DNA of 64,000 nucleotides from Leidyana gryllorum EB-2025a (GCA_048772705.1 JBLWGC010000043.1:489169-553168), one strand, 5' to 3'; numbered from the stretch's first letter, positions 591 to 64,000 are shown. Program-made: numbers and translations. Notes: generated by a model from the letters alone, not told the origin.

Positions 591-1646
591 TCACTCTCGA
601 ATAAGAATAGGGGAGAATCGAGGAGCATTCCAATTGGGAATCACCGCCAACAGCAGCACAGACACCAAACATGTGATCGACACACCCAGAATGTCAATTG
701 TCACTTGAATGGCAGCACCTGCAGAGAGAAGTGAGTGGGAGAGTGGGAGAGTGGGAGAGAGCAACAGTGCCAGTGATCGTAGCCGAGATCAAATGTGTGA
801 GAGGGGCAGTGACTTTAGTGAGTTAAACACAAAGTAGTGATTGTTTGTTTATACCTGCGTGTGCAGGATCGAATCCGCACCACCAGAGCGCCAAAGGCAT
901 AAAAGTGCCAATGAGGACCGCGACAAAGACGATCAAATACATTGAAGCGCAGATCGCTGAAACGCAGCAGGAGATGTCTCCGCTATGGGGGAAGAGTCGC
1001 TTACCGGCCACCTCCCATACTGTGCCTTCGAAGAGATAGACACGGGCAAAGGACACCGCGGATAGAATGGTCGCCAGCTTGAGACTGCGCAGACAAACAG
1101 AGTACGTTAGACATCTCGCCCCACCGCACTGCAGTCTACTCACCCCGTCCAGAGCTCGCGACGCACAAAGTGTTGGAGTGTCTTGTGGGGGTAAAAGTCG
1201 TTACGGGCGATGGCTCTGATGACCAGAACGGTAGATTGGCTACCGGCGTTGCCTCCGGCTCCAACGAGCATTGTGAGGAAGAATACAATGATGGGATGTT
1301 GGACCAACAGTCCCTGGAATCGCTTGAGGATAAAGGAGGATAGACTCTGGAGGACCAGAAGCGCTACGAGCCATGAGAAGCGATGAGAGAATCGATTAAG
1401 ACTCTCAACCTCATCGGGTACGCGGCGATCGCTTTCAAGTCCACCTCCAGTGTTGGTGGTTACAAGACAGGTGGCGGGTCCCAAGGTGCGGGCGCTGGGA
1501 TGTGTGACCATGCTGGGTACTTCGGACATGTAGTCGAGCACTTCGACGCTTTCGGCGCGGAGTGTACTCGGTCGCAACATTCCAACCCCCAAATTGATTG
1601 ATCTCTCCAATCCCACCTCAAACAGTGTTTCAGCAGATGACATCAT
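591..1646 (-). CDS. MgtE/SLC41-type divalent cation (Mg2+) transporter, membrane domain, multi-exon
   Basis: Motifs RFSWLVALLVLQ, MLVGAGGNAGSQS and DPAHAG-AAIQVTIDILG match the MgtE membrane domain. Intron 1085-1143 is GTGAGT...CTAAC...CAG, with further short introns; TGA at 591-593. Confidence 0.85.
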
Positions 1647-51471: not shown

Positions 51472-54400
51472 TCAAAGCAATCGTGGCAACCGCTTCACCA
51501 AACCAGCCACTCTGCGGAATCTTTCCCCTGCTCCCCTCGCTATCACCCCTGCGCCATTTTCACTCGGGACGTTCACATCGTTCACAGACCGCTGACCGTC
51601 ACCTCCCTCCGACGCCCTATCCAGTAAACACCTCTGAACCTGCTCAAATACCTTTTTGGGACACGGATGGCGGAGCAAAGGCCTAGTCTCCGGCCGTCTC
51701 TCCTCACCTGTCGTCTCCTCGCCGTCTCCCTCCTTTTCCTCACGTATCATGGGATACCGCCCAGACTCGTTCAGCTCACTCACTGCTTGTGCTGCTTGCC
51801 ACTCTTCAATTATACTCTCGGGCAAAGAGGGAAACTGACGGGACTCATTCATTGCCTCAGCCCTTGGTGCAGCTGGCTTACCCTCCTGGGCAGATCGCCC
51901 GGACCCTTCCGGCTCAACAGTCTGTGCCGCTGACCCTCCCTGCTGGGGACACCGCCCGGACCCTTCCGCCTCAGCAGCTCCGGCTTCTTCTTCCCTTTCT
52001 GTCAACATGTAATCCGGCAGGAACGAACGGAACCCCGACCGGGTAGTTTGAGTGGCAGTCTGTGGCTCTGAGCCCTGTTGGATGGGAGAGGGCCCCGAGT
52101 TGTTCCCCTCAGCAGCTTCCCTTAGTGTCGGCGTGTGACCCGGCAGGAACGAACGGAACCCCGACCGCGTAGTCTGTGGCTCTGAGCCCTGTTGGATAGG
52201 AGAGGGCCCCGAGTTGTTCCCCTCAGCAGCTTCCCTTAGTGTCGGCGTGTGACCCGGCAGGAACGAACGGAACCCCGACCGCGTAGTCTGTGGCTCTGAG
52301 CCCTGTTGGATAGGAGAGGGCCCCGAGTTGTTCCCCTCAGCAGCTTCCCTTAGTGTCGGCGTGTGACCCGGCAGGAACGAACGGAACCCCGACCGCGTAG
52401 TCTGTGGCTCTGAGCCCTGTTGGATAGGAGAGGGCCCGGAGTTGTTCCCCTCAGCAGCTTCCCTTAGTGTCGGCGTGTGACCCGGCAGGAACGAACGGAA
52501 CCCCGACCGCGTAGTCTGTGGCTCTGAGCCCTGTTGGATAGGAGAGGGCCCCGAGTTGTTCCCCTCAACGGCTCCGGCAGCTTCCCTTAGTGTCGGCGTG
52601 TGACCCGGCAGGAACGAACGGAACCCCGACCGCGTAGTCTGTGGCTCTGAGCCCTGTTGGATAGGAGAGGGCCCCGAGTTGTTCCCCTCAGCAGCTTCCC
52701 TTAGTGTCGGCGTGTGACCCGGCAGGAACGAACGGAACCCCGACCGCGTAGTCTGTGGCTCTGAGCCCTGTTGGATAGGAGAGGGCCCCGAGTTGTTCCC
52801 CTCAGCAGCTTCCCTTAGTGTCGGCGTGTGACCCGGCAGGAACGAACGGAACCCCGACCGCGTAGTCTGTGGCTCTGAGCCCTGTTGGATAGGAGAGGGC
52901 CCCGAGTTGTTCCCCTCAGCAGCTTCCCTTAGTGTCGGCGTGTGACCCGGCAGGAACGAACGGAACCCCGACCGCGTAGTCTGTGGCTCTGAGCCCTGTT
53001 GGATAGGAGAGGGCCCCGAGTTGTTCCCCTCAGCAGCTTCCCTTAGTGTCGGCGTGTGACCCGGCAGGAACGAACGGAACCCCGACCGCGTAGTCTGTGG
53101 CTCTGAGCCCTGTTGGATAGGAGAGGGCCCCGAGTTGTTCCCCTCAACGGCTCCGGCTGCTTCCCTTAGTGTCGGCGTGTGACCCGGCAGGAACGAACGG
53201 AACCCCGACCGCGTAGTCTGTGGCTCTGAGCCCTGTTGGATAGGAGAGGGCCCCGAGTTGTTCCCCTCAGCAGCTTCCCTTAGTGTCGGCGTGTGACCCG
53301 GCAGGAACGAACGGAACCCCGACCGCGTAGTCTGTGGCTCTGAGCCCTGTTGGATAGGAGAGGGCCCCGAGTTGTTCCCCTCAGCAGCTTCCCTTAGTGT
53401 CGGCGTGTGACCCGGCAGGAACGAACGGAACCCCGACCGCAAGCTTTGAGGTGTTGTGATGCTGCTGAGGGAGTCCATAGTGCACTCGAGGGGTAGAGAG
53501 GAGCCGCTGAAGTGTTCGAACAGCCGTCCGAACAGCCGATCAGGTGTCTCGGCAATGAAGTGAGTTCTCAGGTCTTCTGTTAATTGCGCTAAACCACCTT
53601 CTGTTACCTTCTTGACATGTTCTTCCGATATGTCAGGAAAGAATGGTGGGATCTCTCGTCCTAAAATGTTGTGAAGCGGTTGGGGGCTGACGTCTCCGTG
53701 TGAGAATGAGTCTGGCGCGTCAGTCATGGCCGTGCTGGCGCACGTCCACATCTGTGAGCTCGGAGGCGGCAGAGATGAGCCTCCATTGACTTCTCGATAG
53801 AGCAGTTGTAGTCGATTCAGAATCGTTAACCACTCCTTCTCATTGTGCATGGGCCTCTTTTCGACCTCGCGAGTCTGAGTTGGGACTAATTCCACCTGAT
53901 ACTCTATCTTGTTAGAGTTCTTTCCTGGGTTTGAGAGTTTGACGTCGTACTTGGCGAGGGCAGCGAGTTCCGAAGCCATGACTCCCATCTCTCCTTCGTC
54001 CATGAATTGTGTTGAGGCCCTATAGAGCGCCATAGTGGTGCAGAAGGGAGTGGCAGAGTAACGATTCTCGTGACAGAAGTCCGCGAACCGTTTGGCATTC
54101 GCCAAACACACCTTGTTCATCGACTGGGCGGTGTCGGCAAACGTCTCAAAGAGTCTCGAGCGATCCTTCTGGCTGGACTTGATGGAGAAATTGAATTCCT
54201 TCCCATTGCTAACGACAAAGAACTCGTCCTGCGGCTCGTCCGAGTTTCGTGGCGCCATGGGGGTGTGGCGGTACGGCGACGCGACGGCCGATGACACAAA
54301 CTCCGGGACGTTCAAAATGAGTCCATTGTTCACCACCTCGTGCCGGACTGTGGTGGTCTACGTTACGCGACGGTATGCGTACAACCAGATTGATGTAAGA

Positions 54401-54580
54401 TTCACTCACCTGCGTCGTCTCGACCACACTTTCCGTCCTGCTGGAGATGGTGGTGCTGCTCGTTACCAAATCGGATGCTGAGCCGAAAGTCGCGCTGGCC
54501 ACGACAGCTAAACTGCTGCCAAAGCCTGTGCGACCGTTTGCAGCGGACTCAGAGGGTTGAATTGAGATTGCCCCGGCCAT
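51472..54580 (-). CDS. Putative secreted tandem-repeat protein, paralog A (2 exons)
   Basis: ATG 54580; exon 1 carries hydrophobic LAVVASATFG; phase-0 intron 54358-54409; conserved domain shared with paralog B; 12 x 38-aa repeats. Confidence 0.8.
52015..53440 (-). repeat. Coding minisatellite: 12 near-identical units of 114 bp (two of 123 bp) plus a partial unit
   Basis: Unit encodes TRSGFRSFLPGHTPTLREAA(GAV)EGNNSGPSPIQQGSEPQT; spacings of 114 and 123 bp read directly from the sequence. Confidence 0.97.
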
Positions 54581-54969
54581 TGTACAAAAATCTGATTCCT
54601 TCCAAAATAAATTGCGGTCGGTGAACACCTCCCTTGCGTAGACACATTGGCCGTCAAGGCAGTTGATTACGAGGGTCCCGTTGGTTCGTTCCCATCGGTG
54701 GTTCATTCCACGAATAGACACACATATATTTCAGCCGAGTGTAATAAGGACGACCCAATGGTACTCAATGTCGGTCAAGGTGGGGTGCCAGGCGGAGGTC
54801 CCCCACAGTAAGGAGGGACTTTCGTGGTACTTAAAGTTCTCAAAGAAAAGCCATGGTTTGCTGAGCGCTACTTGCCATCAACAGCGAGCAACGTAACCTT
54901 AGAAGAGGCTCAAGTCATGTAGGTGGAGACGACGCCGACGACGACGACTCTGAGCACGAATAAATTAGT

Positions 54970-57900
54970 TTACCTGCGGCCCGCTGTTGCTCGAGAGGCG
55001 AGAGGGAGTCGAGTCTTCCTCTGGTCGGGCGTCTCGCCTGCATTTGTTGTCGGCGCGGAGCCAGGCTGCAGCTCTTCGGGAGTAACCGGTGAAAGCCTCG
55101 TTTCGGGTACCCGAACGCTGGTCCTGAAAACTTCGGACTTTGTTGTCGATTGAACAGTGGTAGTACTCTTGGATTGATGGAAGCTGGTGGTTTGAGATTG
55201 TGTCGGACCACTCTGAGATACTCGGGCGGCCTCCGGAGTGCCACTCGAGATTCGTTTTGGGTCTCGTCGTTGTAGGGTGGCTGTGCTCGTGGTGCTACTG
55301 TGGTATTCTTCCTGCGAGATCAGCACACTCGATTCCTTTTTGGGAGGGGATCTCGCCATCTTCGAGGCAGATGTGCTCGATGGGAAGGACTGCTGCATCC
55401 CATATCCTGAGGACTTTTTAATTGCGCCCTGTTTCCTCATTGCAGAAGGTGAGCCAAGACTTTGCTGGGAAGATCGGGGGGTTCCTCCTGCGCCTGGCTT
55501 AACTGCTGATGGGGGGCTCCTGGCTGCTGCGGGGACCGGCAACCCGGATACTATGCCCAACCTGGCCTTCCGCATGCGGTCTTCATGGCCGATTGGGACT
55601 GGATGAGGGTCTTCTGCCGCATTGGCTGAAACGCGACGAGAGGGTTTGCTTTCTGGCAGCGGGGGTGGGACGCTATCTGCTCTCGTTCTCGGCTGCAACT
55701 CTTCTTCTGTGACAGTCTGCACTCCTTGTGTACCAAAACCCGGTGTGTAAACTTGTGTGTAACTCTCCTCGTCTGCGACAGGCTGCACTCCTTGTGTACC
55801 AAAACCCGGTGTGTAAACTTGTGTGTAACTCTCCTCGTCTGCGACAGGCTGCACGCCTTGTGTACCAGACCCCCTCACGGAAACTTGTGTGTAACTCTCC
55901 TCGTCTGCGACAGGCTGCACTCCTTGTGTACCAAAACCCGGTGTGTAAACTTGTGTGTAACTCTCCTCGTCTGCGACAGGCTGCACTCCTTGTGTACCAA
56001 AAACCTCTGGGTAAACTCGTTTGTAAATCTGCTCCTCTATGACGGGCTTCAATTCTTGTGTGTGACTCTCATCCACTGTGACGGGCTTCACTACTTCTGG
56101 ACAAAACCCTTTGGTGGAAACTTGTGTGTAACTCTGCGGACCAGGGCCTGCCCGAAAGAGAGGTTCACCGCTCGATATGACTCGCTCCGACTCGCGACCT
56201 CCGTCTACGAGTGTAGAAACCTCGTAACTCGCCTGGACGAATGGACTCTTGCGCACTCGTCCGCTGTCGAGCAATTCTTGAGGGTCATCGCTCACATAGA
56301 GTGCACCTTGAGGAAAACTCTCTGCGCCCTGTGCTTCCCTCCCGCCACCACTCTCATTCGGCGGTGAGGTGGTTGGAGGCGGGGGAGGCGGGGGCAGTGG
56401 AGCAGATGCGAGGGAATCAATCGCGCCTTCGCTGCCAGTCCTCTTGCCGTCGGAGAGAATTCGATTTATCATCTTCACAGGGTCTTCCTCCTCCACTTGT
56501 GGCCACTGTGTTTTGACCGTAGGTTTTGCCCCGGCCGCCCTCTCACCGAGTTGAGACTCATAGGAGGACATAGCGCCATTGTAGTTCCCAGCCGCTGCCC
56601 CACTTTGATCGAGTGTGGAAACTTGCCTGGGCAGCGGAGGGCGCGGAGCGGGCTGGAGGGCGTCTGTGGAGGGAGGAACCGACGATCCCTTAAGGTCTTG
56701 GCCGATCTCGCGAGATCGCATGTAACCCACGACGCCGTCGAACGGGTTTCCATATACGGGGCCGGGAGTGGGAGTCTCGAGTATCGCTGTGTTGACAACC
56801 GGAGCGGAGGCCTTTGAGGTTGGAGCAATATGGAAATGCTGGGGTTTGGGGAATTTGGGTTGTGCCCTGGGGGAAGTCATTTGCTCCGCAGCCCAGTGGG
56901 GGTATGTGCTACGGCTGTATTTACCCATCGGATCAAAGTTGCGCTCTCCAGTCTTCTCGCGTGGCAATGATGAGCCGCTGAACATATCCATCAATCGGTC
57001 AAAAAGCTGAGTAGGTGTCTTGGAGACGAAGGTCGGAGTCAATCCCTCTGTCAACTCTCTGAACCCTCCTCTGGACACAGTCTCGACAAAGTTGTCCGCT
57101 ATGGCTGGGAAGGGTGGCGAGACTTCTCGGTCGTACTGGTTGTTTTGAGCTTCCAGTTCACGCTTGAATCTCTGTGCCGCCGTTTCCGGGGCGCTGCTTG
57201 TCGCCGGGACACTGTTTGTCTCCATCGCGGCAGAGCTCGCGGCTGTAGACTGGTCTGTTGATGCCTCCCTCGGCAGAGCTGGCAGTCCAGAAGCTTCGCG
57301 ATAGAGCGATTGCATTCGGCGCACAACCGTCCGCCATTCATTCTCGTCGTCCATCGGCCTCACTCCGACCTGGGGATCTTGGCTTGGGACCAATTCCACC
57401 TGGTACTCGATCATGTTGGAGTCTTTTCCCGGGTTCGAGAGCTTGACGTCGTACTTGGCGAGGGCAGCGAGTTCACAAGCCATGACTTCCATCTCTCCTT
57501 CGTTCATGAAGTGTGTTGAGGCCCTATAGAGCGCCATAGTGGTGCAGAAGGGAGTGGCAGAGTAATGATGTTCGTGACAGAATCGAGCGAACCGTCTGGC
57601 ATTCGCCAAACACGCCTTGTTCATCGACTGGGTGGTGTCGATAAACGTCTCGAACAACCTCGAACGATCCATCTGGCTGGACTTCATGCGGATCTTGATC
57701 AGATCTCCAGTCAGACCGTCTTTGTTCAAGACGAGAGCAAACTCGTCTTTTGGCTCGCCCGGGTTTCTTGCCACTTTCTCTGGAGGAGCCATGGGGTGGT
57801 GGCGGTAACGCGTCTTGACGACCGTCACTCCCACCTCTGGGACGTTCAAGACGCCTCTGCTCCTGCCGACGTTCAAACGGAGCCCAGTTGCATTGTTCAC

Positions 57901-58145
57901 CGACCCGCGCCTGCCTGTGTTGGTCTGCGGTACGTAACAGATTTGTATTGTGACCTCCTCGGAGAACTCACCGACTCGGACTGAAACACACTTTCAGTCG
58001 CGCTGGAGGTCGTGGGGTTGCTGCTGCTGACCAATCCGGATACTGAGCCCAACGCCGCGCTGGCCACGACAGCTAAGCTGCCGCCAAACCCTGTGCGACC
58101 GTTGACAGCGGATTTCGAGTGGCGAATACAGATTCCACCGGCCAT
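54970..58145 (-). CDS. Putative secreted tandem-repeat protein, paralog B (2 exons)
   Basis: ATG 58145; exon 1 carries LAVVASAALGSVSGLV; phase-0 intron 57925-57971 at the homologous position; shares SSQ.DRSRLFETF...FCHE..YSATPFCTTMALYRAST...KYDVKLSNPGK with paralog A. Confidence 0.8.
55709..56131 (-). repeat. Coding minisatellite, 66-bp unit (GTQGVQPVADEESYTQVYTPGF), 4-5 good copies plus degenerate ones
   Basis: 66-bp periodicity, e.g. ACTCCTTGTGTACC at 55721 and 55787. Confidence 0.92.
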
Positions 58146-58457
58146 TCTACAAAAATCTGATCGATCAAAAAATAAAGTGCGCTGAACACCTCCCTTGCGT
58201 AGACACATCGGTCGTCGAGGCAGGTGATTGGGAGGGTGTCGTTGCTTCCCATCGCTCGTACATTCCACGAATAGACACACTTAGATTTCAGCCGAAACTA
58301 ATCAAGGACGACAACATGGTGCTCAATGTCGGTCGGGGTGACTATTCCACAGGCCAATGTCCCCCACAGTCAAAAGAGATTCTTGTGGTACTCGGTGGCC
58401 AATATGGTACTCAAAGAAAAGGCGGCGGTCGGTAGAGGATGCACTCGCCTGGAGCTG

Positions 58458-58502
58458 GAGACAGAAACGGCCCCACCTGCCAGAATTCTACCTGAAATTT
58501 TT
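58458..58502 (+). promoter_or_regulatory. Putative U1 snRNA proximal promoter (conserved upstream 45 bp)
   Basis: 43 of 45 bases match the region upstream of the second U1 copy (61421-61465, minus strand). Confidence 0.5.
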
Positions 58503-58665
58503 AACTTACCTGCGGATTGCATTTCACCTGATCACGAATAGGTGGGCAGGGGGCCGAGCAGCCACTGCACACTGGTGATGTGACGCCCCTGGGAGTATCA
58601 ACAACGTTGGTCCTCCCATCTGAGATTTTATGGCATGGTGGATGGAGCTTGCTTCGACACCGACA
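58503..58665 (+). ncRNA. U1: U1 spliceosomal snRNA, copy 1
   Basis: 5' ACUUACCUG; SL1 CACCU-GAUCACGAAU-AGGUG (U1-70K loop); SL2 AGGGG...CUGCACAC...CCCCU; SL3 GGGAG...CUCCC; helix H CGGAU/AUCUG; Sm-like GAUUUUAUGG; SL4 GGUG...CACC. Confidence 0.93.
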
Positions 58666-58907
58666 GAACTTGTATAATTGTGTACATTGAACATTATAGT
58701 ATAAAACATTAACAAGTGAAGTATCGCAAGCACCTTTCTGCTGTCTAAGTAGTTCCATGACTCTCTTTTCCAGTGATATCTGATTGTTATGAGGACTACT
58801 AGAGGAAGGAACTATGAGAAACCGGAACTGAGGGTGCGAGTGTTCGTCATGTTTAAAGTATAATAAAAGGCTGTAACACCAGCTATGGATGTCCTAGAAG
58901 TGCTGCA

Positions 58908-61200
58908 GTGAGCCCGACGGACCTGTTGAAGCACGATTGCAAGTGTCTTGTAGGAGACCAGCAGATAACACACACGCGTGCTGGAGAGCCTCTACCCTTT
59001 AGATCCTCACATGACCCCGAAATTATACGTCACATTAGATCAGACCCGATGAAATGGCAGCAGCGACAGGTCTCTAAGAACAAGGCCCATCACGATATTG
59101 GTCTGAAGGAAGCAATCAGGCTGCCTCCTATTCCCCCAGGTCCACCCCTCAGCAGGTGCTGCCAGCAGCCTATCCGAAACCAAACCCAGAATCTCTTGCG
59201 GGCAGAATGCGAAGTATCAGCTCAAAGCGGTCCGAGGGCAGCCGCAGCCAACTCCGGTGGCGTCCAAGAAATCCTCATCAGTGAGGGAAGGGAGGCTCTT
59301 CCTGAGCTAATCGGCGATGCACCTCAGTATGAAAACGGTAAAGGCCTTCTATCCGCTCAAGTGAATGTGACTTGCCACAAAGGGATCGGGGCCAGCTTTT
59401 GACAACCACCGCCCACAACCGCTACCAGATAACACTCGATGGCACTTCTGGGCAAACCTTTGCTCAGACGAAATCGAGAGACCGGTCAGTACTCATCCAG
59501 TCCGTCTTATCAGCGACCAGGGACCCATGCAACTCGAGCTCCACCAGAGATGGAAGTGGTGGGCTGCCGGTACGTCCTTTTAGTTGCAATCGTAGCATGC
59601 GTGTTTCTGGTTGGAGCGGGGGTTTGAAGACCACCTCCCCCCCCCCCACCCTCAGTGGGGGATTAACTAAGACAGTTACTACGCAAATTATACGAGACTC
59701 CGGTGGATTGACTCCAACTACTTAGCAGAATGAGAACAGTGAGACAACACCCTCAGTTATTGTTCTTGGAGTAGGGCGAACGCTCGAAAACGGTATCGAG
59801 CGTAGCCACCGCTGCTGGGAGCAACGTTATTGGCTTTGAGGCACATCCAGAGTTCTCCCCTGAACCAGCCACGTGTAGGCTTCCAGGCGGGACACAGCCC
59901 AGCCGGCTTTGGCCTAGCCTTCCACTCTCTCATAGCTGACCAGAGAGACTACTTTCCAATCAAGAGAATAGCGGGACGAAGATAGATGAGTTATGGGTCC
60001 GCCCCCATCACCAACGAGCTTTTGACACCACACGCCGAGTGAATATTCGAGTGAACTTCCACTCGAACATGGGCTCCAGAATGAGCAGTCCAAAACGTGC
60101 TCTCCATTCAGCACTTGACGCTCCATCCGGGGACAGCGGCGGCCTCCAAGATGGGAGAAGCAAAGAACCAGAAGTGTCGAGTTGACTTTCCTGAACGCGA
60201 GCACCACAAAGCCGCGTCTAACAACCACCACAGCTGAATTTTGATCACAATGCCTCGAGAGCTCTCAGAAACTGCCATTTTGGGCGTCATGGCCAACTGT
60301 GCCCTGCAATTCCACTCCGTAGGCAAAAGCGACAATCGACGGTGAGCGACCTGGAGACATATGACACGTGTCAAGGCCACACGAGAGACCCCTCAGCTCT
60401 CCTTTGGCGGCCGCGGGTTCGTCACGGAAAGACGCGTTTAGATTCTTTTTAGCATTCGGACACTTGGGCAGTTTCCGACAACCGTTGAAGGAGTGCTTCA
60501 AACCGCATCAATTGTGACTCAGCTGCGTGATAACAACGAAGACACCGAGAACGAAGAGCAGGCGGCTGGGCGGGGGGACCAGCCGGGCTTCGGAGCATCA
60601 CGCCTGCGGTGCCAGGACGACTGGGGCCACGGCACCTCGCAAGCCCCCGGCTGACCGACTCCAGACTCACCGAGGCTTCAATGAGCCGCCAGCCACTGCC
60701 CTTCTTTCGCCACAGCAACAGAGGAAGATGAGACGGGACGACCGCGGATTCATTCGGTCAGAACCGAACAATACATAAAGGCTGCGAGTATAGGAGTACC
60801 CGGCCGAGATGGGTTACCTGTGTTTGCAAAGTCACCACATTACCTGTGCTGTGCCTGGAGTCCTCCACCGAGACCCCTCAATCCCCACGGAAGGGGAGTT
60901 GCGCTCCTGAACCTCAATGTAAAGCCATAGAAGATCTGGATGAAAAAGGAGACGTCAGCCAGCCGGAGTGCGGGGCGGGGAACTGGGAGAGCTGACCTCA
61001 ATCCATTAAGGCAGTAATCAAAGGTCGTCAAGCGTCTTCTATCTAATGTCGTCAAATGTCTTCGAACAGCTCCCTTTCGGAACCATTGGTTGTGCTTCGG
61101 GGCAGCTTCAATCTTCATACTGAGTAATCAGAATCTGTTGAGATTTGCAATAGCTCCTCGTGGCAGCGGGGGTTAGCCCATCTCCCTGCGTCTGCGAGTA
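58908..61200 (+). pseudogene. Decayed coding-like sequence with many stops and frameshifts; includes a possible FkbM-type methyltransferase motif-I remnant near 59750-59860
   Basis: No long ORF. Frameshifted reading VIVLGVG/AN../TVSSVATAAGSNVIGFEAHP resembles the VLDVGANxG..S..AA..G..VIAFEP pattern. Confidence 0.3.
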
Positions 61201-61257
61201 TATCTCGTGGGTCGACCTGTTGAGCAATGATAGAAGCGCTCTGATAAAGAGTCGCTC

Positions 61258-61420
61258 TGTCGGTGTCGAAGCAAGCTCCATCCACCATGCCATAAAATCT
61301 CAGATGGGAGGACCAACGTTGTTGATACTCCCAGGGGCGTCACATCACCAGTGTGCAGTGGCTGCTCGGCCCCCTGCCCACCTATTCGTGATCAGGTGAA
61401 ATGCAATCCGCAGGTAAGTT
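61258..61420 (-). ncRNA. U1: U1 spliceosomal snRNA, copy 2 (inverted, identical to copy 1 by eye)
   Basis: Reverse complement of copy 1; CAGGTAAGTT at 61411-61420. Confidence 0.93.
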
Positions 61421-61634
61421 AAAAATTTTAGGTTGAATTCTGGCAGGTGGGGCCGTTTCTGTCTCTTGGGACACACCGGAACGCGGACACCAAAGTGTGG
61501 GTGTGAGCTGTTGAGCGGGTGCTGATCCGTGTCTCTGTGTTAGGAGGTTATCAGAGGTTGACTGTGGATGTTTAACTGAGGGGTGTGCCAATTTGGAGTT
61601 GAGTATTGTGTATTTGTGTTGTGTAAAGGATATC

Positions 61635-62108
61635 ATGTCGTTTGTTGGGGGCGACCAAGAGGTGTTCTCGAACGGAGATGAGATCGTGTTCGAACGCATT
61701 GTTCCAATAGGCGAGGAGGACGAGTTCCGACGAGACATGGCTCGAAAGTACCGCGAGCACTGCGGTTCGATGGAGGATTTACTTCGGTGGTTGTGGAGTT
61801 TGGAGGCCTGTAAGTTGATCAACAAATATGTGGTGGCCGAACTGGCGATGAGAACGTGTGTAAGTGGGGCGGAGGAAGTGGCGAAATACATTGAGGGGAA
61901 ACGATTATTCCTCGGTGCCGAGAAGACTTCGTTGAATCCACCAAAGAGATGGGTTCAACAGAAGCTGAGTTTCTCGGGGTCGGGGGCGGCCGCGACCACA
62001 AAGATGACGACACGAATGGCGGCGTCGCCCGCGAGAAATGTGGTGAAACGTGAGGGTGCGGGCCAAAAAGGAGGGCACTGTACTCTCTCTAGCGCTACGA
62101 ACGTCTGA
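61635..62108 (+). CDS. Hypothetical protein (about 157 aa)
   Basis: ORF from ATG 61635 with globular-looking composition; divergent from U1 copy 2. Confidence 0.45.
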   Translation: MSFVGGDQEVFSNGDEIVFERIVPIGEEDEFRRDMARKYREHCGSMEDLLRWLWSLEACKLINKYVVAELAMRTCVSGAEEVAKYIEGKRLFLGAEKTSLNPPKRWVQQKLSFSGSGAAATTKMTTRMAASPARNVVKREGAGQKGGHCTLSSATNV

Positions 62109-62451
62109 TCGATTGTCGTAGCTGACACGACAATGTGTATATATATCAGATCCACCTGACGACAGACAAGGCCGAAAACAGCACACTCAGGCACAGCACA
62201 GCATTACTCACTCAGGCACAGAAGATTGATTGAGAGATTGATTGGTAGCGATAGATTCGACCCAAACAGAGATAGAGAGAGGGGGGAAGTGAGTGAGTAG
62301 GGGATTGGATACGAATGGATTGATCGATTTGGTTTGATACTGATGGTGAAATTTGGGAGTGAGTGAGAAGTGTGTAATAGTTTCTGGTAAGGAAGATTGG
62401 ATTACAGGTCGATGTTTGTGACATATCGTATGTTTTTATTAGGATCAATCA

Positions 62452-63564
62452 ATGACGCAGGGTGAGGATGTGGGTTCGTCGGACACTGTCAAGGACACTC
62501 TCCAAATTATTGAGGACGACGACGTCGTCGAGCGGCAACATCTGCGTGGCGCTTCTATGACGAGGACAACGACGCGGCCCGATGTATGGTATGATCCCCG
62601 ATCAGGTGGTCGTGTGCGGTATGTCGAGTTCAAGGAGGACGGACTCTACCGAAAATACATACTGGAGGAACAATCTGGAACGATGCAATGGGTCAGGTGG
62701 AAGGATCCACCTCGAGCACTGAACGAGAAGAAGCTGGTATTCGAGAAACAAGCCGAAGGATGTTTTGTTGAGCGGTTTATTGATACGGAAGATGTCGAAG
62801 AGGCTCAGTTGGCAGACTCTGACGACAGCGAGGAAGAACGACGACGGCTGCAGACTGTGTATTTAGTCCCACGGGTACGCAAAAGGTCCTCGTGGCAATC
62901 AGGAGATACAGATATTCACTACGACCCTCGATCTAACGGCTGTATCCGCTATGAACGGGGTGAAGATGGATACTATCGGAAGTTTCGACTGCAATTTAGC
63001 AGAGATCGAGCCCACGACTGGACTCCAGTCTCTGAACAGCGAAACCTGTCCGAAGTCGTTTATCAACGGTCACCCGAAGGCTTCTATCTGGAAGTCTTAC
63101 TTCCCCTTCCCGTGGCAGCTTGTATCCCTTCGAGCTTTGAGGAACGTTCCCGCCTGTCCCAATTACGGAGCGGTGGCGGCGGAGGGTGGCTCGACGATGC
63201 GCACGGCTCTTTATTGCCCCATCACAGAGCCGCCGTGGGCGCCCCTTCGTTCAACTCGTCATCAAAATGTCCAGATGAAGCTGAGCCCCCCGTCACGGTG
63301 TGCGTGCACAGTCCGTCTACCAAGGACAGCACCCACGTGACAGAGCTCATTCAGCGGACTTCCGTCTTCAGCGAGGCCGAGAAGGTGCTGGTGGGCACAC
63401 ATCATCTGTCGCCCAGACCTTACGGGCCGTCAGGGGGGAGGAGCAGAACATCAGAGGGCGCGTTGCAGGGGCACAACCCAAATTTCGACGAAACTGTTGT
63501 TCCACGGAGGCGGAGAATGACTGACCTGACGGACCGACTAACTTCACTTCTCCCAACACCCTGA
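62452..63564 (+). CDS. Hypothetical protein with two internal copies of a ~65-aa domain
   Basis: DVWYDPRSGGRVRY..EDGLYRKY...EGCFVE versus DIHYDPRSNGCIRY..EDGYYRKF...EGFYLE. Confidence 0.7.
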   Translation: MTQGEDVGSSDTVKDTLQIIEDDDVVERQHLRGASMTRTTTRPDVWYDPRSGGRVRYVEFKEDGLYRKYILEEQSGTMQWVRWKDPPRALNEKKLVFEKQAEGCFVERFIDTEDVEEAQLADSDDSEEERRRLQTVYLVPRVRKRSSWQSGDTDIHYDPRSNGCIRYERGEDGYYRKFRLQFSRDRAHDWTPVSEQRNLSEVVYQRSPEGFYLEVLLPLPVAACIPSSFEERSRLSQLRSGGGGGWLDDAHGSLLPHHRAAVGAPSFNSSSKCPDEAEPPVTVCVHSPSTKDSTHVTELIQRTSVFSEAEKVLVGTHHLSPRPYGPSGGRSRTSEGALQGHNPNFDETVVPRRRRMTDLTDRLTSLLPTP

Positions 63565-64000
63565 CATGTATGAGGAGGTTGAAAGAGTGGATGGTCCGTT
63601 TCAGTTAATCAGAAGCGCGGGGAGTCTGCTTGCTGTTTATCGAACGAGATCTCCTCCTTCTCTCTCTCTCTCTCTCTCTCTGGGGTGTCTGTAATGTTAG
63701 CCTTTACACTACACCCACCCACCACCGAATGTTCGATCAAAATTCGCGCCCCCCTGAATGAGCGAGCTCCGATCCGAGGATTTCAGTTTACATCCACCGA
63801 GATTACGCCGGACCTGCGACAGCTACACTCTCCGTAGTATCCTATAGCTAACTATCTGTGTGTTTTGTTGTGGGAATCAGAATTGTTGTGAGTGACCGAT
63901 GATTTTCTTACTGCATCCAACCCATTGACCAATCGGGTTTTCAGACCCCAACCGAAGATACTTTCACGCTCCCGCTCCCGCTACGTTGTGTCAAACCTCC

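Follow-up and report, generated by a model that had tools for sequence, protein, structure and literature searches.

Two convergent variant U1 small nuclear RNA genes around a single-copy spacer with a solo long terminal repeat in Leidyana gryllorum

Dada transposons encode a DDE transposase and insert at a fixed site inside a U1, U6 or transfer RNA (tRNA) gene; they are 4.7-11 kb long, are bordered by duplications of 6-7 bp and have no terminal inverted repeats (PMC3706591). Utopia and Keno are non-LTR retrotransposons (LTR, long terminal repeat) that insert inside U2 genes (PMC4640811), and in compact genomes tRNA genes are the targets of Ty3 and of Dictyostelium TRE, DGLT-A and Skipper (PMC5006619). 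The locus described here lies in a stretch of 64,000 nt from Leidyana gryllorum EB-2025a (C43:489169-553168), which is referred to as the window. It is composed of two copies of a variant U1 small nuclear RNA (snRNA) gene that face each other as the arms of an inverted repeat, with a spacer of 2.6 kb between them that contains a solo LTR of a Ty3/gypsy element. The assembly is 15.5 Mb in 237 contigs, and position 64000 of the window is the end of contig C43.

The locus shares with Dada an association between U1 genes and mobile DNA, but the fixed-site splitting of the gene, the duplications of 6-7 bp, the DDE transposase and the length of 4.7-11 kb are all absent from it. Utopia and Keno resemble it in their homing to snRNA genes, though they insert inside U2, and no remnant of a reverse transcriptase (RT) or endonuclease lies between the U1 arms. 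U1 genes that undergo concerted evolution, such as the arrays and dispersed variants of animals, are comparable in that several U1 classes occur as tandem arrays and dispersed variants, and in that near-identity is limited to the gene and its promoter while the flanks are unrelated. Unlike the animal families, the present one belongs to a protist with a 15.5-Mb genome, its paralogs are up to ~35% apart with none at the Rfam cut-off, and the pair in the window is inverted and convergent. The reading that we favour, with a probability of roughly 0.62, is that one variant U1 gene is present here as two convergent copies, which have been homogenised by gene conversion, and that the interior is a non-coding spacer with a solo LTR.

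The inverted repeat and its U1 genes

Within 57000-63000 of the window there is a single inverted repeat, the arms of which (58458-58667 on the plus strand and 61256-61465 on the minus strand) are 210 nt long, 99% complementary and 2588 nt apart, with an E-value of 1.4e-102 in a BLAST of arm against arm. The arms differ only at 58489 (T/A) and 58494 (G/A) of the plus strand, and both the repeat search and the arm sequences agree with an earlier note on this DNA, which had described a 210-bp inverted repeat with two mismatches in the upstream 45 bp. The abrupt divergence of the flanks reported in that note is also seen, with no homology left outside the arms in local alignments against shuffled sequence (p = 0.09 for the outer flanks and p = 0.30 for the inner flanks). 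A target-site duplication is lacking at the outer borders of the arms (..GGAGCTG / arm ... arm / TTGGGAC..), in line with the note, which had seen none, and likewise at their inner edges. The genome search provided no second copy of the right flank or, apart from the LTR, of the interior. The 3' flank of the right arm, CAGAGCGACT.., is also present at the closest paralogs, C82a and C85b, and the right copy therefore occupies an old context.

The left flank matches only the upstream region of a neighbouring paralog, with the match ending at 58392. This similarity joins 57271-58392 to 53767-54831, where the 5' part of the left neighbour gene and its upstream region are 74% identical to a tandem paralog, and it stops 66 bp short of the left arm, which places the left U1 gene just outside the duplicated gene unit. 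A synteny attempt with the neighbouring 370-aa protein identified no homologue, and a U1 30-mer had no match among metagenome contigs.

The left arm encodes a variant U1 snRNA at 58502-58663 on the plus strand, which is matched by the Rfam model RF00003 over model positions 1-166 with 58.4 bits and an E-value of 4.6e-13. The right arm encodes an identical RNA at 61260-61421 on the minus strand with the same score and E-value. The use of this covariance model on the arms had been proposed in the earlier note and gave a full-length match to both, albeit below the RF00003 gathering score of 69.5 bits; with default settings Rfam lists nothing anywhere in the window, and U1 emerges only under an E-value threshold. 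There are 42 U1 matches genome-wide, the best with 68.9 bits, and because all of them fall below the gathering score, the shortfall is attributed to divergence of the lineage and is not specific to the pair.

The hallmarks that had been claimed for each arm can be read in both, namely the 5' end (ACUUACCUG), loop I (GAUCACGAA), loop II (CACUGCAC) and an Sm-like site (AUUUUAUGG). As RNA, loop I of the arms is GAUCACGAAU, and the consensus of the U1-70K site is GAUCACGAAG; loop II (consensus AUUGCAC) and the Sm site deviate slightly from consensus. The 5' sequence, which pairs with the 5' splice site, is unchanged in 15 of 15 aligned paralogs, and the U1 paralogs retain both it and the fold although they diverge by up to about 35%. 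The consensus fold of the 15 paralogs is the canonical four-way junction, composed of stem-loops I-III and helix H, together with stem-loop IV. It contains 45 pairs with 94% of cells in standard pairs, and both-sided (compensatory) changes are found in 30 of the 45. In the shuffle control 0 of 500 trials reached any of five measures, and pairing fell to 39-46% when partners were slid, while the single-sequence fold energy (z = 0.05) is uninformative for a multi-branched snRNA. Because the fold is kept by compensatory changes, the U1 variants are considered to be under structural constraint and not to be decaying pseudogenes. Judged by these sequence features both U1 genes look functional, and expression of both copies would be expected.

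Upstream of the RNA, the left copy carries a box resembling a proximal sequence element (PSE), GAGACAGAAACGG, which starts at -44 and occupies 58458-58470 on the plus strand; the box of the right copy is located at 61453-61465 on the minus strand. The position of this motif is common among U1 genes of the genome, as GAC(R)N1-3AC(G/A), usually GGAGAC..ACG, is found at -39 to -47 of 17 of the 21 U1 genes, with the flanks falling into at least eight unrelated contexts. The box is followed by an A/T-rich stretch at about -10 to -1. Each arm starts no more than 1 nt from the start of the box, continues through a spacer of 31 nt and the RNA, and ends 4 nt beyond the RNA (CAGA); similarity across the U1 family likewise stops near the arm end, with CA at +1/+2 in most copies. 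Since the arms span the box to approximately the RNA 3' end, as the family similarity does, each arm amounts to no more than a minimal U1 gene. The GGAGAC..ACG box is a candidate proximal promoter element of snRNA genes in this lineage. A box-like GACATAAC also occurs ~50 nt upstream of the U5 gene on contig C173.

The spacer between the arms

The interior (58668-61255) is a single-copy spacer in which no gene was detected; when searched against the genome, as the earlier note had suggested, it was found once apart from the LTR at 58774-58878. The note had contrasted the enclosed DNA, as lacking an intact gene, with the rest of the window, and ORF, Pfam and homology searches concur with this. 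Among the parts of the window that lack an open reading frame (ORF) of at least 120 or at least 150 codons, the interior is the longest. The longest interior ORF (58908-59402, plus strand, 164 aa) has a weak codon score and no relatives, with no homologue returned by a word search, and by a rough estimate random sequence of the interior's size yields an ORF of this length about a quarter of the time; it is probably no gene. Pfam analysis of 17 interior ORFs from both strands, with E-values up to 1, identified no family and gave two chance-level matches at E about 0.1. A hidden gene was rejected on the combination of no Pfam family, no ORF homologue, a weak codon score and an ORF length in the chance range, and FkbM-like and chromodomain-like "fossils" were discarded as having no Pfam match. 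The interior as a decayed retroelement was likewise rejected, as tblastx against 15 genome loci with retrotransposons or LTR copies provided nothing better than E 0.12.

A Ty3/gypsy solo LTR is located at 58774-58878 on the minus strand, 110 nt beyond the 3' end of the left U1. It reads TGATAT...GTAACA with CCAG on either side (58770-58773 and 58879-58882), a target duplication of 4 bp, and it is regarded as a solo LTR because of its TG..CA ends and the CCAG on both sides. The description of the interior as a "decayed insert" is therefore correct in one part, as a retrotransposon landed there and left a solo LTR, and without support in the other, as the other 2.4 kb carries no trace of a gene or element. 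The same 105-bp element had been considered as an snRNA-type or pol III promoter on account of a TATA-like stretch and, at two sites, T-runs downstream; this candidate was dropped, since the element is absent from U6 genes and proved to be an LTR.

One further pattern was noticed in the interior, at 60731-60775 on the plus strand, where a box-like AGACGGGACGA is followed by CAATACATAAAGG with the spacing seen in U1 promoters, and UUACCUG occurs twice downstream. As a marker of a non-coding RNA gene it was rejected, because ~1.4 such patterns are expected by chance over this length of sequence, the fold z is 0.45 and no paralog exists; it is probably a chance occurrence.

Origin of the arm identity

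Under the gene-conversion reading, the locus would have started from two convergent U1 genes, each a full minimal gene with the -44 box, a 31-nt spacer, a 162-nt RNA and 4 nt of 3' flank. Conversion would keep the copies near-identical, and the limits of its tracts would be those of the block from box to 3' end, the sole sequence common to U1 paralogs. A Ty3/gypsy element integrated downstream of the left U1, at a distance of 110 nt, and recombination between its LTRs would later have left the solo LTR. The evidence for recent copying comes from the 31-nt spacer, which is identical at 29 of 31 positions between the arms and about half identical between the window and C82a. Because this unconserved spacer is still so alike, selection alone is insufficient to account for the arm identity, and the arm sequence was therefore copied recently, either through conversion or through duplication. 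This agrees with one of the options in the earlier note, a recent or gene-converted inverted duplication, in that identity is limited to the minimal gene, the flanks bear no relation to each other and the unit occurs once in the genome.

Conversion is favoured between the two because the tract ends within 1-4 nt of the block shared by paralogs, which a homology-bounded tract predicts and random breakpoints do not, and because both mismatches sit in the least constrained 31 nt (the chance under an even spread over 210 nt is (31/210)^2 = 0.02). Gene conversion between two pre-existing U1 genes thus probably explains the identity of the arms, although its preference over duplication is deduced from one genome and two mismatches. 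The alternative is that the 210-bp minimal U1 unit was recently duplicated in a non-homologous manner, for example by templated break repair, and placed in inverted orientation 2.6 kb away without later conversion. The 99% identity of the arms, their abrupt ends and their unrelated flanks are as such an event would leave them, and the 3' flank common to the right arm, C82a and C85b is missing from the left arm, which fits a derived left copy. Set against this, the copied piece would have to end 1-4 nt from the ends of a functional and conserved block, a rare result for a random pair of breakpoints. The solo LTR also lies 110 nt 3' of the left copy, with LTRs of the same family at like distances 3' of U5 and U3, and its divergence of 8% from its nearest relative suggests that the left copy is not very young. 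A simple duplication is accordingly judged unlikely, though it is the strongest of the rivals.

The earlier note had also raised the possibility of a composite element with snRNA genes as its arms, and a present or former composite or Dada-like element of 3 kb would fit an interior without a host gene and the known targeting of snRNA genes by transposons (PMC3706591, PMC4640811). This claim did not survive the searches: the interior and flanks are single-copy, as is the 3-kb unit, which has no outer target-site duplication, and neither an empty paralogous site nor a second genomic copy of the arm-bounded unit was found. The interior encodes no transposase, RT or endonuclease domain by Pfam and tblastx, both U1 genes are whole where Dada would have split them, and 2.6 kb is below the size range of Dada, so that such an element is very improbable here. 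Recombination can take place between inverted repeats of 210 nt that are 99% identical, a crossover between them would flip the interior, and the genes converge, from which a functional inversion of the interior or double-stranded RNA (dsRNA) made over it by U1 read-through could be proposed. The interior holds no gene or supported promoter whose orientation would matter, and the assembly contains one orientation. Transcription of snRNA genes usually stops close to the 3' end, and this early termination makes overlap across 2.6 kb unlikely. Functional inversion or dsRNA production is thus improbable, while occasional inversion of the interior as a by-product of conversion is plausible. Contig C43 ends 2.5 kb from the locus, which raises the question of whether one arm is an assembly artefact. 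Artefactual inverted joins are typically long perfect palindromes, unlike these arms, with their short length, two differences and unique sequence on four of four sides; we regard this explanation as highly unlikely.

Several points weigh against the two-copy, gene-converted locus that we prefer. The U1 score of the arms lies under the Rfam gathering cut-off, conversion and a recent 210-bp duplication look alike in a single genome, and the statistics hang on two mismatches. The two-copy picture comes from the sequence of one assembly, the role of the -44 box is deduced solely from its conserved position, and the reading offers no source for 2.4 kb of the interior.

The LTR family and the U1 repertoire

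The LTR in the window exhibits 81-92% identity to elements on contigs C173, C33 and C123. The full-length copy on C123 (L034 2766-7039) has two LTRs of 109 bp that are 99% alike and 4165 bp apart. Its pol ORF has the order RT, RNase H and integrase, with Pfam matches to RVT_1 (5e-40), RT_RNaseH (7e-35), Integrase_H2C2 and rve. Beyond one LTR lies a primer binding site, TGGTGACAAC (which begins TGG), and ahead of the 3' LTR lies a G-rich polypurine tract. The LTR copy on C33 has CACT on both sides. Further copies were identified with a sequence-only model built from the aligned LTRs.

Several of these LTRs neighbour genes of snRNA type. The LTR on C173 (L022 1501-1606) is located 100 nt beyond the 3' end of a U5 gene and has the relative orientation seen in the window, and the one on C213 (L072 1501-1577) is found about 139 nt beyond the 3' end of a U3 gene and is oriented the other way. 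On C35, an LTR (L071 1501-1604) with a piece of internal sequence is located between divergent U5 and U1 genes. No recognised RNA gene was found near the LTR sites on C33, C51 and C75, the last of which is a weak match, and the relevant side of the C123 site is a contig end, so that it cannot be judged. This gives 4 of ~9 LTR sites within 250 bp of snRNA-type genes, when by a rough count snRNA-type neighbourhoods make up ~0.35% of the genome; the resulting chance of ~1e-8 is to be read with the small sample and the incomplete RNA-gene catalogue (which lacks U4) in mind.

A literature search identified no LTR element with a preference for the neighbourhood of snRNA genes. The retrotransposons that target tRNA genes are the nearest in pattern, as the solo-LTR family recurs ~100-250 bp from small-RNA genes in a gene-dense genome in the manner of a "safe haven". 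It differs from them in adjoining U1, U5 and U3 and not tRNA genes, on a small sample of 4 of ~9 sites. The retrotransposon in the window may have been drawn to the snRNA gene. A tentative proposal, which we hold to be possible but not probable, is that a Ty3/gypsy lineage with very short LTRs of ~105 bp homes to snRNA-type gene neighbourhoods (U1, U5, U3 and a U5-U1 pair) as safe havens, and that this targeting would keep the gap without genes between the U1 pair open as a landing pad.

Two sequences beside members of the LTR family were recorded. On C123, next to the 5' LTR and in the sense of the element (L024 about 1290-1480, minus strand), there are four tandem units of ~50 bp, each with a T-run, that follow the pattern ..TGATGTCGTCA.CCTTA.C.CGTTACAAGTT.ATCGG..TTTTT. 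On C33 (L023 about 1400-1510, minus strand), the LTR is followed immediately by ~100 nt that terminate in a T6 run and could be a small pol III-type gene; Rfam analysis of this sequence provided no match.

The genome encodes at least 20 dispersed U1 variants beside 342-bp tandem U1 arrays, located on C216 and C159, whose identity to the U1 of the window is 72-75%. The nearest relatives of the window U1 are on C82 (87%), C85 (about 80%) and C21 (about 80%). Most of the dispersed U1 genes lie 0.5-0.8 kb from a divergently oriented U5, and an Rfam scan by E-value found no U5 near the pair in the window. This divergent U5-U1 module, with its genes 0.5-0.8 kb apart, occurs at least eight times (C12, C33, C35, C85, C152, C159, C186 and C82), and several copies have long flanks in common, as if dispersed as a unit. 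A second inverted U1 arrangement is present at the end of the C216 array (L066, C216:13000-17000), where units face each other across ~2 kb with 96% identity over 555 nt.

By itself, the pair in the window is an ordinary multi-copy snRNA locus, and its by-products, the -44 box, the U1 family and the gypsy family, are of more interest. The pair defines a natural minimal U1 gene of the lineage, which runs from the -44 box through the 31-nt spacer and the RNA to ~4 nt beyond the RNA. It also adds to an unusually diversified U1 repertoire, in which the dispersed variants and the 342-bp arrays are all structurally intact. If the association with snRNA genes is true, the gypsy family would be the LTR-retrotransposon counterpart of tRNA-gene targeting, and the targeting of small-RNA genes by LTR elements would extend past tRNA genes.

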